Positions 29,831 through 34,650 of a DNA stretch of 64,000 nucleotides are shown in pieces (the stretch's first letter is position 1; each line of letters opens with the position of its first letter). The notes beneath the pieces are model-generated. The model worked only from the letters and a program-made list of their open reading frames with translations, was not told where the DNA came from and did no database searches. Made by a program: the position numbers and the translations under genes. The stretch comes from Tetramitus jugosus. Its lineage: Eukaryota; Protista; Heterolobosea. The stretch spans positions 124,001-188,000 of the forward strand of contig OW569369.1 in the NCBI GenBank assembly GCA_937625935.1, given 5' to 3'.

Positions 29831-30048
29831 TTTATCTGATGGTGGTGGTTGTGATTGTTGGGGGTGTTGAGCCAGAAGCTTTTCGGTGGATGCAGTGTTT
29901 TGTTTCTCTGGAATTTTGCTTCTGGTGTTGATATTTCTGAGACGAATTTGCCGCCCTCTCACGAATTTGGACTGGGGAATCTTTCCGACTTGGAAAAATA
30001 CAATGGGAGAAAATCAATCACTAACTACTGTTCATTGAAAAGCTTTAA

Positions 30049-30063
30049 GGTGGCCGTCCACTG
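30049..30063 (+). repeat. Left TIR
   Basis: GGTGGCCGTCCACTG preceded by TTAA at 30045-30048. Confidence 0.9.
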
Positions 30064-30064
30064 A

Positions 30065-30097
30065 AGAAATCGTATAAATAGGAGAAATCGTATAAAT
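30065..30097 (+). repeat. Subterminal direct repeat AGAAATCGTATAAAT x2
   Basis: Identical copies at 30065-30079 and 30083-30097, immediately inside the left TIR. Confidence 0.85.
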
Positions 30098-30391
30098 TTA
30101 CACATCGGACAACAAGTCAAACAACGAGAAACACATCAACTCGCTTTCCTATTATAATGAATACTGCCTCATGGTTCTGTTGGTGTTGGTTGTGTCACAA
30201 ATTGTCACAGGAGACTGCGAAGGTGATGTGCCCGTGCACATTTCATTGTTGATGGATTCAGAAGAGGATATCTCTGTGATGTCCTCTGTTTCGTGAAGAC
30301 CTCGCATCAGTTTCTCAAGATCGTTTGTTTCTTCCTCAGTGTTGTTGCTGCTGTTGTTCTCAACTTCCCTTGGTGTTTGTGTTTTTTAAGG

Positions 30392-30475
30392 GCATATCGT
30401 GAAGCTGCAAAAGAAGGATTTATATCCGTTGCACGTGCAATCTATTCAAACGCTCTATCGGAATTCCCCACTAAA
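30392..30475 (+). pseudogene. Captured fragment resembling PRP6 HAT/TPR repeat
   Basis: VARAIYSNALSEFPTK resembles PRP6 CARAIYAYALQVFPSK (recalled from memory); short match. Confidence 0.5.
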
Positions 30476-30917
30476 GCCATACAACTTGATCATCTGAATC
30501 TTTGCCTCCCTCGTCTTCTCATCAGGTATATTCTTGACCCAACTACATCATTTGTCAACAACATCACATACACAATTATACTCAAAAACAACAAGTATGG
30601 GCAATTGCAGCTATATACATACTCTGGAACGAAAAATCTTGACTTCCTATCAATGTACTTTTGTGTCCGATTCACTAATCGTTCACTCATCAACTGTAAG
30701 CATTCTGATTTTTCAACCCACCACAGTGCATACACATCGGGCACTGTTGCATTCGACGATAACTTGACTTCACAATTGGCAGGCAACCCCGCAACCACCT
30801 TCTTCACACTACAATTAAAAAACATATACAAAACAATAGTTTAACTTTACAAAAACATTCTTACAAATTGTAATACACAAAACAAAAAATACATACGCCT
30901 TTAACAAATCATTCTGT

Positions 30918-31382
30918 TTATTGATTAACAACTCTCCACCCTCCAGGGACCAATTCAAATTGTTCCCATGAACATGCCAAGTAGAATCCCTTCCACTTCA
31001 CATAACCATACCAAGAACCATTTTGATACTTCCAATCCAGAACATCATCAATTTGATAGAACTGTCCATTGGAGGTGTAGTTTTGGTGAATGTGACAGTA
31101 CTGGGTTCCACGTTTCCTTTGCAATTTGCACGGTAAGCCTGACTTGCAAACGGCCAAACAGTATGAGTACAAATTGTCCATATAAGACCTTATTGTTGAT
31201 AGATTATTGACCATCGAAGATCGAAAATCCCGACACGTCAATACCAAATTCAACACATCTTCTACACCAAGGAACGAACCAACTAGATACACAAATAAAT
31301 CAATATGTATATCGGTTATTCTTACTTTTATGTTGGTTATGTCTTCTTTTGGCGCCTTTTCCTTGTTTTCCCATTTGTTCAT
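30918..31382 (-). CDS. F-box / C3H zinc motif / chromodomain protein (transposon cargo)
   Basis: IHIDLFVYLVGSFL..EDVLNLVLTCRDF (F-box-like); C-x9-C-x10-C-x2-H; YQIDDVLD.....GYVKWKGF....SWE (chromodomain). Confidence 0.72.
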   Translation of the reverse strand: MNKWENKEKAPKEDITNIKVRITDIHIDLFVYLVGSFLGVEDVLNLVLTCRDFRSSMVNNLSTIRSYMDNLYSYCLAVCKSGLPCKLQRKRGTQYCHIHQNYTSNGQFYQIDDVLDWKYQNGSWYGYVKWKGFYLACSWEQFELVPGGWRVVNQ

Positions 31383-31383
31383 T

Positions 31384-31655
31384 GATTTTTTTCATCAAAA
31401 AAACTTGCAAAAAACAGAAAACAAACACTCTGAAGGACATCGTGAGAGCGAGTGACCTGATGATGAGTATGAGTTTTCTGAAGTTTGTCAAATTCTGTCC
31501 TATTGATACCATTAGAGATTTTTTCATCAAAAAAAACTTGCAAAAGCACAGAAAACAAACACTCTGAAGGACATCGTGAGAGCGAGTGACCTGATGATGA
31601 GTGTGAGTTTTCTGACGTTTGTCAAATTCTGTCCTACTATTGATACCATTAGAGA
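31384..31655. repeat. Tandem duplication with a ~133-bp unit, two near-identical copies
   Basis: Copies start at 31384 and 31517 (GATTTTTT..CATCAAAAAAACTTGCAAAA...GATACCATTAGAGA). Confidence 0.95.
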
Positions 31656-31664
31656 GGTGTTGAA

Positions 31665-32300
31665 TTGTCCGATAACTTGAGTATTCAGATCTCATTGATG
31701 ACACTTGCTCTTCAAACATATCCTGATAACACTGACGATGTCAACAAGATTATTAATAACATTGCTAGTCAATTGAATAGCACTGCACTTGCTTCAGATG
31801 AAATTGTAGACATGTTGAAGCGATTGTTGTTGGTGCCACTCGAGTCATACAACAATGTGCTAACAGTTTTGAAGTTGGAGAAGTATGGTGATATTATTCA
31901 TTCTCTTGGATATGAACAGAGAAAGTTTATTGCACTGAGCATTGTGAGATGCGCACTTGACAATGGACACAAGATTTCAACATTTGAACAAGTGAACAAA
32001 CCGTTTGATTTGATTCGTCCACTGTTGAAGGATGAGGAAGACCAGACAACATTCTCACCTTCTGACGACTCACCAATAGCTGCAACATTGCTCGAAGATT
32101 TCGAAGAAGAACAGAACTTGATTGCCAGATTGGTTCATTTGTTTGACAATAGCGATTCTGATCAATTGTTTAAAGTTTTGGCCGCAGCCAGAAAGCACTT
32201 TGGTCAGGGTGGTGTCAAGAGAATTCAATACACATTGGTACCACTTGTATTCTCCTACTTGAAACTTGCTCAGAGAATCTACAATGCACACTGCGAATAG
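31665..32300 (+). pseudogene. VPS35: Captured internal fragment of VPS35 (retromer)
   Basis: LL.VPLESYNNVLTVLKL, EDFEEEQNLIARLVH, ARKHFGQGG.KRI.YTL.PLVF; both termini of the ~800-aa protein are missing. Confidence 0.85.
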
Positions 32301-32627
32301 ACACCTCTTGTCGACTCTCCATCTTTTTTGATTGATTTGGTTGTTGTTGTTGATGTTCGTTGTGCGACTTGTGTTTTTCGTTGTTGTTGTCGCGTTCAAG
32401 ATTGGATAGATAGGTGGATATATTATAAAAAAATACAATAAATGTTGTATCAGTTTCCTCTAAGCTGCGGAATTGGTGCAGTTGTAAAAATTTCCGTTGA
32501 GACTGTCTTTACAACGGCAACGGCCATCTACCTCGGTTTAAAAAGCGCTGTCTTTTTCGCTGTTTGATTCATCTCACACAACAAATACAACACAACAAAT
32601 ACACCACACAACAAATACAATAACATT

Positions 32628-34541
32628 ATGCCACGAGGCGTGCCTAAGGACGGTAAGAGAAAGAGAAAGAGAGAGACTGTCAAAAAGAATGAATACTCAT
32701 CACATTACGTGGTCAAGGTCGGTCTGAAGTCTCTGTTGTTGCATCATCCAACTCTGTTACCAATCATACAAACTCAAGCTCTGGAGATTACAAGGATTGC
32801 TCTTCGACTCACAAGATTTATAAACATTTTTGTTTTGAGGCACTTGGAGAACAATTGTGATATCCCTCTCTTGAATCAAGGATTTATTCAACGAATCGGT
32901 TCAGTGTTGTTTGGACGCAAGTCGAAGACAAGAGACGATAATGTCAACCTCATCAACGGGTCAGTCAACATGGATGACGTAATAATCAAGCTAAGGAAGA
33001 TTTGTGAGAAGTTATCCAAATCCATCAATTACGTTGCCAAGTCTCTCAATGTCAATATTTCTAACATGCTCAAGTTCACATTGGAACAAAGACTGAGAAA
33101 GTACTTGAGAGTGAGGATGGCTCAATTGCACAATGGTCAATCAATCCCCAGGTCTGAATACAGAAGAGTAGTAGAATACATCATCAGAAAGTTGACATTT
33201 GTCACTCCAGTTTATGATTTTGTCAAACTGCCTCCAAAAGAGTTGATAGAGACTATTCCTGTGTTGATCCAAGAGGTTCGAACATTTGTTGGTGCTGAAA
33301 CCGACGAAGTGGTTGATGAATCGTTTGTGAACAACAACACCAATAACATGCTGAAGTTTTACTGGCATGTTCAACAGTTTCTGATTGTCAATGGAACAAA
33401 ATCATTTGCATTGTTGCCCTTGTCCCACTTTAAATGTAGATGCATGGAGATAGGTACAACGGACCTGATAGACATGCTCCAACAGAAGAAGAAGGGAAAT
33501 GTACAAGTAATTGAACCCATTGAATTGAAGTATAATCTCAAGTGTTTGAATGTTGGAACAAAGAAGATTCAAATCGACTCAATCAGAACAGACGGTATTC
33601 AGGCCTCTGTTGTTCTCAGACATCAACTCGTTGGCATCCACAAGAACAATAAGGCAAAGGTATCCAAGGGCCAGAAAGAAGCAAAGAAGATGAAGAAAGA
33701 AGCAACTATTGTTGATCAAAATGCAGATTACTTGATTGGTATCGATCCTGGTATTGTCACATTGATGAGTTGTGCAGATTCAGATGGTAAAAAGTGGGAG
33801 TTCTCCAATAAGGCATACAGACGACTGTCTCATCATTCACAGAACGCCAAACGTTTGTTGAAATACAAAGCAAAATGGAACACGAAAACTGGAAAAGATT
33901 TAGATGAACTCCATAATTCGATCAAACAAGCCAGTGTATCGACAAGTGATCTGTTTATCGAACACATTGATTCTGTTTTGAAAGTCGAAGATGACTTGCT
34001 TGGTTTTTATTGCACTCCAAAGGTGAAGAGACTGAATTGGGACAGCTATATTATGAGAGACAAAACAATTGCTGGAGTAATGAATGATTTTCACAAAAGA
34101 GCAAATGGAAGAAAGATGGTCATTGGCATGGGGAATGCTGGTTTCAAAAATAGTTACAGAGGACATGCTTCAACGCCCAAGGGCAAGCTGTTGAAGAAAC
34201 TGAATGAACGATTTGAAGTGAAAATGATTGACGAATTCATGACCAGCCAAAAATGTTGTGCTTGCCATTCCCATTTGAAGCCAGTCAAGCACAAACGAAT
34301 GGACAAGAAAGGTGTATCGGCAATCTCTATTGTACGAGGAGTTAAGCAGTGTGCAACCACTAAATGTTTAGTGACTCACAACAGAGACATCAATGCGGCC
34401 AAGAACATGCTCCATCTACTGAGAACAGAAATGGATGGACAGTCACGTCCCGATGCCTTCAAGAGGAAGAAAAAGGTCGCAAAAGAATTAATCAAAATGG
34501 TGGAACACCTCCAAGGCTCACTCCATCAAGCTGCTATGTAA
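32628..34541 (+). CDS. Fanzor1 (eukaryotic TnpB-derived RNA-guided endonuclease), 637 aa
   Basis: SIRTDG motif, RuvC-I IGIDPG, RuvC-II IDEFMTSQKC, zinc finger (CCAC...CATTKC), RuvC-III NRDINAAKNM; NLS-like KRKRKR and KRKKK. Confidence 0.93.
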   Translation: MPRGVPKDGKRKRKRETVKKNEYSSHYVVKVGLKSLLLHHPTLLPIIQTQALEITRIALRLTRFINIFVLRHLENNCDIPLLNQGFIQRIGSVLFGRKSKTRDDNVNLINGSVNMDDVIIKLRKICEKLSKSINYVAKSLNVNISNMLKFTLEQRLRKYLRVRMAQLHNGQSIPRSEYRRVVEYIIRKLTFVTPVYDFVKLPPKELIETIPVLIQEVRTFVGAETDEVVDESFVNNNTNNMLKFYWHVQQFLIVNGTKSFALLPLSHFKCRCMEIGTTDLIDMLQQKKKGNVQVIEPIELKYNLKCLNVGTKKIQIDSIRTDGIQASVVLRHQLVGIHKNNKAKVSKGQKEAKKMKKEATIVDQNADYLIGIDPGIVTLMSCADSDGKKWEFSNKAYRRLSHHSQNAKRLLKYKAKWNTKTGKDLDELHNSIKQASVSTSDLFIEHIDSVLKVEDDLLGFYCTPKVKRLNWDSYIMRDKTIAGVMNDFHKRANGRKMVIGMGNAGFKNSYRGHASTPKGKLLKKLNERFEVKMIDEFMTSQKCCACHSHLKPVKHKRMDKKGVSAISIVRGVKQCATTKCLVTHNRDINAAKNMLHLLRTEMDGQSRPDAFKRKKKVAKELIKMVEHLQGSLHQAAM

Positions 34542-34650
34542 GTCCCGATTATGTAGGAGCGTTAAGGTGTCTTCTCGGGAAATCATAATTTTTTTATTAT
34601 GGTTTGATCGACAGTGGACCGCCACCTTAATGAGCTGAAGTTAAAAATCT
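34542..34650 (+). ncRNA. Putative Fanzor omega-RNA: scaffold ~34542-34630 plus flank-derived guide
   Basis: Stems 34543-48/34575-80 and 34580-89/34596-605; loop TTAAGGTG (34562-69) is complementary to CACCTTAA (34623-30); located between the Fanzor stop and the element's right end. Confidence 0.7.
34612..34626 (-). repeat. Right TIR
   Basis: Reverse complement GGTGGCGGTCCACTG, followed by TTAA at 34627-34630. Confidence 0.9.

Follow-up and report, generated by a model that had tools for sequence, protein, structure and literature searches.

A Fanzor1 nuclease in a non-autonomous, probably Kolobok-type TTAA transposon of Tetramitus jugosus, with junction scars suggestive of homing

What moves a eukaryotic RNA-guided nuclease gene whose element encodes no transposase, and what does the nuclease do for that element? 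The question is raised by a 64,000-nt stretch of the amoeba Tetramitus jugosus (assembly GCA_937625935.1, contig OW569369.1, positions 124,001 to 188,000, forward strand; hereafter the window, along whose full length coordinates are counted), in which a Fanzor1 gene lies in a TTAA-flanked element next to the RPC3 gene. We propose, with a probability of roughly 0.72, that this is a non-autonomous cut-and-paste Kolobok element whose cargo is a Fanzor1 homing nuclease plus DNA captured from the host, and that some of its truncated copies retain scars of homing. The genome searched comprised 26.35 Mb in 56 contigs of one haplotype (longest, 0.70 Mb; C labels below); L077 and L098 are contigs from outside this assembly, L077 from a metagenome. 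The strain, T. jugosus CCAP 1588/3C, is reported as 26.3 Mb in 55 scaffolds plus the mitochondrion, with a second haplotype deposited (PMC11106597).

The 637-amino-acid (aa) open reading frame (ORF) of the element matches PF07282 (E value, 9e-10) and, as a single sequence, SpuFz1 (E 5e-16, residues 131-614). When a profile of 56 relatives is used, the Fanzor1 structures (SpuFz1, 4e-87; PpFz1, 8e-66; GtFz1, 2e-62) score far above mimivirus Fanzor2 (3e-11) and TnpB (3e-5), and the protein is therefore assigned to Fanzor1, as the sequence-only reading of this DNA had proposed. Matches to the three Fanzor1 structures are full-length, whereas those to Fanzor2 and TnpB are C-terminal only. The protein, closer to Fanzor1 than to Fanzor2 or TnpB, has an enlarged REC/WED region, and it carries the RuvC D-E-D triad and zinc-finger TNB domain of Fanzor1; catalytic motifs are retained in 17/17 complete ORFs examined. 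The ratio of nonsynonymous to synonymous substitution rates relative to the window copy is 0.15 to 0.19 (0.09 for the nearest copy), and the Fanzor ORFs are under purifying selection. A viral sequence collection contained just two Fanzor relatives (22 to 24% identity) and no relatives of the transposase discussed below. Two metagenome contigs (L032:2375-4556 and L033:1725-3897, from JGI 3300042923) encode Fanzors 63 to 64% identical to the window protein and lack the terminal inverted repeat (TIR) and TTAA of the right end; the sequence that they share ends 35 nt beyond the stop, at a small hairpin whose last bases are CTCTAT. L032 is gene dense, with a DUF4326 gene upstream, and is possibly a giant-virus contig. 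On this arrangement, the clade of the window Fanzor may also ride another class of element.

The sequence-only reading had described a pair of 15-bp TIRs with one mismatch and TTAA on both sides, subterminal direct repeats, an intact Fanzor ORF ending 85 nt short of the right end, and no transposase, all of which are borne out. The TIR arms (30049-30063 and 34612-34626) each have TTAA on the outer side, the 19-nt arms formed by TIR plus TTAA are 95% complementary, and this is the single GG-type TTAA-flanked TIR pair within the window. The element spans 4,578 bp between the TTAA duplications, and the ORF list and Pfam scans revealed no transposase ORF inside it. The insertion point is 10 nt beyond the RPC3 stop, and removal of the element leaves ∼230 nt between that stop and the likely PRPS start, the short intergenic region that had been expected. 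An empty allele, likewise anticipated, is present in a 2,509-nt groundwater-metagenome contig, which joins 30044 to 34627 with one TTAA, no footprint, and flank-level depth; because of this single-TTAA allele, TTAA is recognized as a duplicated target and the insertion as polymorphic. The parts of the element are as follows.

30045..30048, + strand: left TTAA target-site duplication and predicted core of the target-adjacent motif (TAM) at the empty site (from sequence, the single TTAA of the empty allele, and TTAA at nearly all copy ends)
30049..30063, + strand: left TIR, type A, starting GG (the same TIR class lies directly upstream of Kolobok-type transposase in L077 and L098)
30065..30097, + strand: two 15-bp subterminal direct repeats (30065-30079 and 30083-30097) with the CGTATAAAT motif, which is common to A, B, and transposase-bearing left ends
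30100..30900, no strand: mosaic of short captured pieces, without a Pfam match
30918..31382, - strand: 154-aa cargo ORF, weakly F-box-like/CCCH finger (Pfam E 0.13/0.002, below cutoffs), with a chromodomain-like tail by eye
31387..31655, no strand: tandem duplication, period ∼134 bp (self-comparison; metagenome joint 31413 to 31548)
31665..32300, + strand: captured internal fragment of host VPS35, a Pack-type cargo (PF03635, E 1e-42, profile positions 330-526 of 726)
32628..34541, + strand: Fanzor1 ORF, 637 aa, RuvC triad D373/E536/D587, zinc-finger TNB domain (Pfam, structure profiles, substitution rates)
34542..34630, + strand: predicted omega-RNA scaffold (fold z -1.95; invariant stem)
34612..34626, + strand: right TIR, type A, ending CC (arm comparison)
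34627..34630, + strand: right TTAA target-site duplication, which also belongs to the predicted RNA scaffold (empty allele; fold)
34631..34650, + strand: predicted guide, formed by host flank (the empty allele has it directly after TTAA; analogy to Fanzor1 structures, PMC13565253)

The subterminal CGTATAAAT repeats are likely binding sites of a transposase. The segment 30150-30179 is identical in B-type left regions, the ∼134-bp unit is single rather than tandem in most sister elements, and the predicted guide overlaps the RPC3 stop codon on the opposite strand. Soil metatranscriptome contigs have high depth over the VPS35 cargo (31600-32300), which may be host VPS35 transcript or transcription of the cargo, and nearly none over the Fanzor ORF.

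The genome contains ∼23 full-length Fanzor ORFs (64 to 100% identity), nearly all of them free of stops. Two end types, both GG..CC and TTAA flanked, account for 39 (type A, GGTGGC.., with subtypes) and 21 (type B, GGATGTAG.., a type not in the sequence-only reading) end matches genome-wide, compared with one control match each. The B match at C15 falls in a coding region and is probably chance, as are the pattern matches at C26:239789 and C2:262216. A third left-end type occurs at C39, whose end is also of the GG..CC class, and the CGTATAAAT motif is doubled in all left ends. Between A and B, right-end similarity continues as far as TTATTATGG, beyond which the two types diverge. Similarity among copies halts at TTAA, which is present at nearly all copy ends, in agreement with the boundaries first proposed, and relatives from other samples (79% and 59% aa identity) have the last ten bases plus TTAA unchanged. 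End type is independent of the protein tree (a quick tree on mosaic sequences, used for this point only), and cargo is 98 to 100% alike among copies that are up to 35% different in their Fanzor ORFs; both observations indicate that copies exchange parts. Ghost copies without an ORF were found at C8:461447 and as joints in metagenome contigs. Movement has been recent, since the window copy is 98 to 100% identical to copies at C22 and C8. Orphan ends at C10, C24, and C25, considered as autonomous elements, are right-end fragments instead. A B-type copy (L012:4511) has TTGG rather than TTAA after its right end, and L034 has TCAA at the left end.

The mobilizer of the family is very probably of the Kolobok type, judging from the genes that adjoin its ends: transposase sequence lies downstream of an A-type left end in both L077 and L098, and in T. 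jugosus a transposase piece lies upstream of a B-type right end. L077, recovered by an exact A2-TIR scan of metagenomes, has the 13-bp A2 TIR and subterminal motif followed by a different interior, with an ORF that has N-terminal cysteine pairs and a DFRW motif and matches PF20700 (E 1.3e-5), a family that we take to cover Kolobok enzymes. In L098, TTAA plus GGTGGCGG lies ∼110 nt ahead of an ORF homologous to the L077 transposase. The piece in T. jugosus, on C47, is C terminal, stops ∼70 nt before a B-type right end, and is 93% identical to a broken copy on C1, which retains the first D, the second D (HDQD), DxxH, an H-x4-H-x2-C-x4-C finger, and the E region; a second, older remnant on C50 also has the zinc finger. 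The nearest Atlas clusters of the transposase carry PF20700, and the best one is mostly parabasalid. Kolobok is defined by TTAA, 5′-RR..YY-3′ termini, and a DDD/E transposase with C/DxxH, and a zinc finger after C/DxxH sets it apart from MuDR, P, and hAT, although Kolobok1 also lacks the finger (PMC9587614). RR..YY termini with TIRs are found at the A, B, and C39 ends; a DDD/E transposase with DxxH is linked to the same ends (L077, L098, and C47) and does not lie inside the window copy; and the zinc finger is found in the C1 and C50 remnants. The assignment was made from motifs and profile neighbors, by eye against partial Kolobok material, rather than from a tree with Repbase Kolobok. Kolobok is already known from Naegleria and trichomonads (PMC9587614). 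The suggestion of a non-autonomous Kolobok-type carrier thus gains a DDE partner linked to its ends, while the intact autonomous copy that might have been expected was not found in the assembly.

The C1 remnant (∼698300-699783; L091) starts right after an internal tract of telomere repeats, which replaces its 5′ part, and subtelomeric repeats follow; telomeres in this assembly are (TTTGGG)n, and the arrangement looks as though the chromosome had broken within the element and been healed by addition of a telomere. Two P-like transposases (C8:636185 and C11:180469) were considered as KolobokD-like partners and rejected, with no TTAA-GG ends in view. The C11 gene (∼177900-181250, - strand) is P-superfamily-like, with CxxH, a DEDDh-like exonuclease, and a C-terminal PHD-like finger in an open frame of 1,118 aa; the C8 gene (∼635500-639200, + strand) has the same domains and is frameshifted. 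The contexts of two further sequences (P0008 and P0010) are short and contain no transposase.

A second line of evidence, also absent from the sequence-only reading, comes from truncated copies. Seventeen copies (one of them the C47 transposase piece) are exact at the right end and missing the left end, and two show the reverse (two-sided binomial P, ∼7e-4). In five left-truncated copies (C3, C48, C52, C24, and C25) the place of the left end is taken by TTAA and then 9 to 21 nt matching the start of the right flank. These duplications are exact for 12 to 16 nt counted from TTAA and reach TTAA+18 and TTAA+21 with 1 or 2 differences; among 272 mismatched control pairs the longest match is 8. Two further left-truncated copies have TTAA ≤5 bases from the junction, and no mirror duplication is seen in either right-truncated copy. 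Fanzor1 cuts 14 to 21 nt past the TAM (PMC10432273), and no scar is longer than this published distance. In Chlamydomonas, 5′-truncated Fanzor1-Helitrons have 7- to 19-bp duplications from the target motif, which were ascribed to one-ended rolling-circle transposition (PMC3627910), and Fanzor cleavage has tentatively been proposed for those junctions (PMC10288648). Because the pattern recurs here in a TIR element without an HUH enzyme, the nuclease is favored as the cause, and the scars are rather probably traces of Fanzor cuts.

The right end could also supply the guide RNA. In the predicted fold (z -1.95 for the region), the internal GTTAAGG (34561-34567) would form six pairs with the terminal CC and the right TTAA. 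This stem does not vary among nine ends, which span both end types and protein identities as low as 59%. An inner hairpin ends at TTATTATGG (34594-34602), where A and B ends diverge. In Fanzor1 structures the 3′ duplication is included in the scaffold (PMC13565253). Such a stem would bind the Fanzor cassette to hosts with TTAA and CC-ending termini and would explain why A and B ends are interchangeable. The base before the left TTAA is A or T in 23/24 copies (P, 1e-4 versus window background) and its mirror on the right in 21/37 (left-right contrast, Fisher P, 0.0009), an asymmetry that may reflect either a WTTAA TAM or an oriented transposase. Several copies (L003:5467-5517, L010, L022, and L029) have an intact Fanzor ORF and deletions in the predicted scaffold. 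The right flanks of L002 and L009 start GGTG after TTAA and resemble the left end of the element and the internal GTTAAGGTG; their guides therefore partly match element DNA, with self-targeting or alternative RNA folding as possible consequences.

We postulate the following course of events, the steps of repair and switching being read from junction anatomy. A Kolobok-type DDE transposase acting in trans, presumably also on the window copy, would recognize the GG..CC ends, insert the element at TTAA, and excise it leaving one TTAA. The 3′ end of the Fanzor gene would extend through the right end, the scaffold of the processed omega-RNA being formed by the right TIR plus TTAA and the guide by the next 15 to 20 host bases, as in homologous systems. 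In an empty allele the guide match would lie directly after TTAA, and the nuclease would cut ∼14 to 21 nt downstream, leaving TTAA plus ≤21 nt on the left side. The right fragment could then invade the filled chromatid or homologue, and synthesis would proceed leftward through flank, TTAA, and right end. Completed repair would restore the element; synthesis that stopped early, followed by end joining, would give a left-truncated copy preceded by TTAA and up to ∼21 nt of right flank. Swapped ends and mosaic Fanzor genes would result when the template is switched from one dispersed copy to another.

Several observations weigh against this account. A PF20700 search of the genome gave no match, with the control likewise blank, and PF20700 scores on the transposase pieces are below cutoff. 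No intact transposase is present in the assembly, which contains three broken remnants only, although this search of one haplotype gives a lower bound: the remnants were detected only with a query from a metagenome contig, and broken pieces were searched apart, not joined. All end-linked transposase copies are broken or cut by contig ends. By comparison, there are 12 PF13843 matches to piggyBac-like genes, several in open frames and intact. Twelve of the 17 left-truncated copies have no clear duplication, and some left-truncated copies may have a variant left end further out. The RNA stem, being invariant in the nine ends, shows no covariation, and the one metatranscriptome (as contigs) has almost no coverage of the Fanzor ORF. 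The omega-RNA, the TAM, and cleavage are predictions from sequence and homologues.

With its TTAA target and abundant genes, piggyBac is the natural competitor as mobilizer, especially where the Kolobok enzyme is found only in pieces that would then be incidental. Yet the ends of the family are GG..CC rather than the YY..RR, typically CC..GG, of piggyBac (the contrast is drawn in PMC9587614), the inverted repeat of one duplicated piggyBac-like gene is unrelated in sequence, and both A and B ends adjoin Kolobok-type transposase genes, so that movement by piggyBac or another TTAA enzyme has a slim chance of being correct. Near-identical piggyBac-like pairs do occur, one (C18:38735 and C39:393561) with a 44-bp inverted repeat that is not TTAA flanked and the other (C18:150044 and C30:267320) with >1 kb of upstream sequence in common, over a region that stops short of its ends. 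A Crypton-like element with TTAA as a terminal direct repeat, the alternative raised in the sequence-only reading, would also leave a single TTAA at the empty site through its recombinase, and the A and B ends diverge just after TATGG, a CryptonS motif (PMC13565253). The family, however, has true TIRs at both ends, TATGG lies inside the RNA hairpin with no copy ending there, TTAA behaves like a target site that is duplicated, and the enzyme tied to the ends is of the DDE class (no genome-wide tyrosine-recombinase search was made). The end-linked transposase genes largely refute the Crypton explanation, to which we give next to no credence.

The scars themselves could have arisen in a Kolobok host independently of Fanzor, if a single-end transposase reaction or random break was repaired from an empty homologue by copying a short stretch of flank. 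Gap repair after cut-and-paste is common as a matter of general knowledge, and the majority of truncated copies lack a duplication. Such breaks predict losses at either end and tracts of any length, in contrast to the 17 left and two right truncations observed and to five scars that all lie on the guide side without extending beyond TTAA+21; we consider this origin unlikely. Target-primed reverse transcription of a Fanzor transcript at a nick made by Fanzor or a long interspersed element (LINE), a process resembling retrohoming, would account for 5′ truncation with 9- to 21-nt duplications, the usual LINE signature, and an RNA ending in guide could anneal at the break. But poly(A) tails are absent, the right end is precise, and the C3 scar copy starts within cargo DNA, 2 kb before the Fanzor ORF, so that this route is very improbable. 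Cutting by Fanzor in a Kolobok-type host remains our preferred explanation.

The listed hosts of Fanzors are Mariner, Sola2, MuDR, Harbinger, Helitron, Crypton, hAT, EnSpm/CMC, IS4-like, piggyBac, and IS607. A Fanzor-Kolobok pairing was not found in the literature searched, which did not cover Repbase entries themselves, and a Kolobok precedent under another label is possible. The sequence-only reading had taken the pairing to be undescribed; this holds for the Kolobok host in that literature, but TTAA-type Fanzor1 elements are already known, and the novelty is a Kolobok host for a known enzyme type. Insect-virus elements (HVav-1, SFav-1, and HAmn-1; PMC3627910) and Repbase piggyBac-Fanzors (PMC13565253) have a 4-bp TTAN/TTAA duplication, ∼13-bp TIRs, and no transposase; the former carry no superfamily label, the latter are called piggyBac, and both were compared without their terminal bases. 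GtFz1 of Guillardia theta is a Fanzor1 with a measured TTAA TAM (PMC10432273, PMC11423790), but its loci are reported without inverted repeats and its third catalytic residue is N rather than D. With Kolobok elements the family shares the TTAA duplication, 5′-RR..YY-3′ ends, short TIRs, and a partner DDD/E enzyme with DxxH and a downstream zinc finger (PMC9587614). The best structural relative, SpuFz1, resides in Spu-1 of Spizellomyces punctatus, which is likewise multicopy and transposase-less, with inverted repeats and ghost copies, and has a short omega-RNA between stop codon and right end, as predicted here (PMC10432273). Spu-1 differs in its 30-nt repeats, CATA TAM, and lack of an identified transposase, at ∼20 to 25% identity (PMC10432273), whereas the T. 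jugosus family has TTAA, 12- to 15-bp TIRs, host cargo, and an identified partner. The Chlamydomonas Fanzor1-Helitrons CRe-1/2/3, with intact 3′ ends, frequent 5′ truncation, and 7- to 19-bp duplications from the target motif (PMC3627910; PMC10288648), were given a rolling-circle explanation that is unavailable in a host element without an HUH enzyme. In restorative homing by TnpB of IS605/IS607, the guide comes from the right flank, the target motif serves as TAM, and the empty site is cut (PMC13565253); that is a bacterial experiment with scarless HUH or serine enzymes, in contrast to genome junctions of a eukaryotic DDE host.

The role of Fanzors in their own hosts is at issue, homing having been shown for bacterial TnpB and assumed in eukaryotes. 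In the T. jugosus family, guides can be read at ∼20 intact loci, an empty allele is documented, the strain is in culture with two assembled haplotypes, and the junctions match a Fanzor cut in side and length; similar junctions in the Helitron-borne Fanzors of 2013, recurring with a DDE host, point to the nuclease as common cause. The evidence for homing is indirect but specific. With Kolobok among the Fanzor hosts, the superfamily would have two homing-type nucleases recruited independently, Fanzor1 and the His-Me finger of KolobokP. The 637-aa protein is also a compact candidate editor, for which a (W)TTAA TAM and an ∼90-nt scaffold are predicted. We regard the odds as about even that Fanzor1 homing is active in this amoeba, that one-sided repair maintains the family and shuffles its ends, cargo, and Fanzor genes even without a transposase, and that the duplications around truncated copies, here and in Chlamydomonas, are the footprint of the cut.

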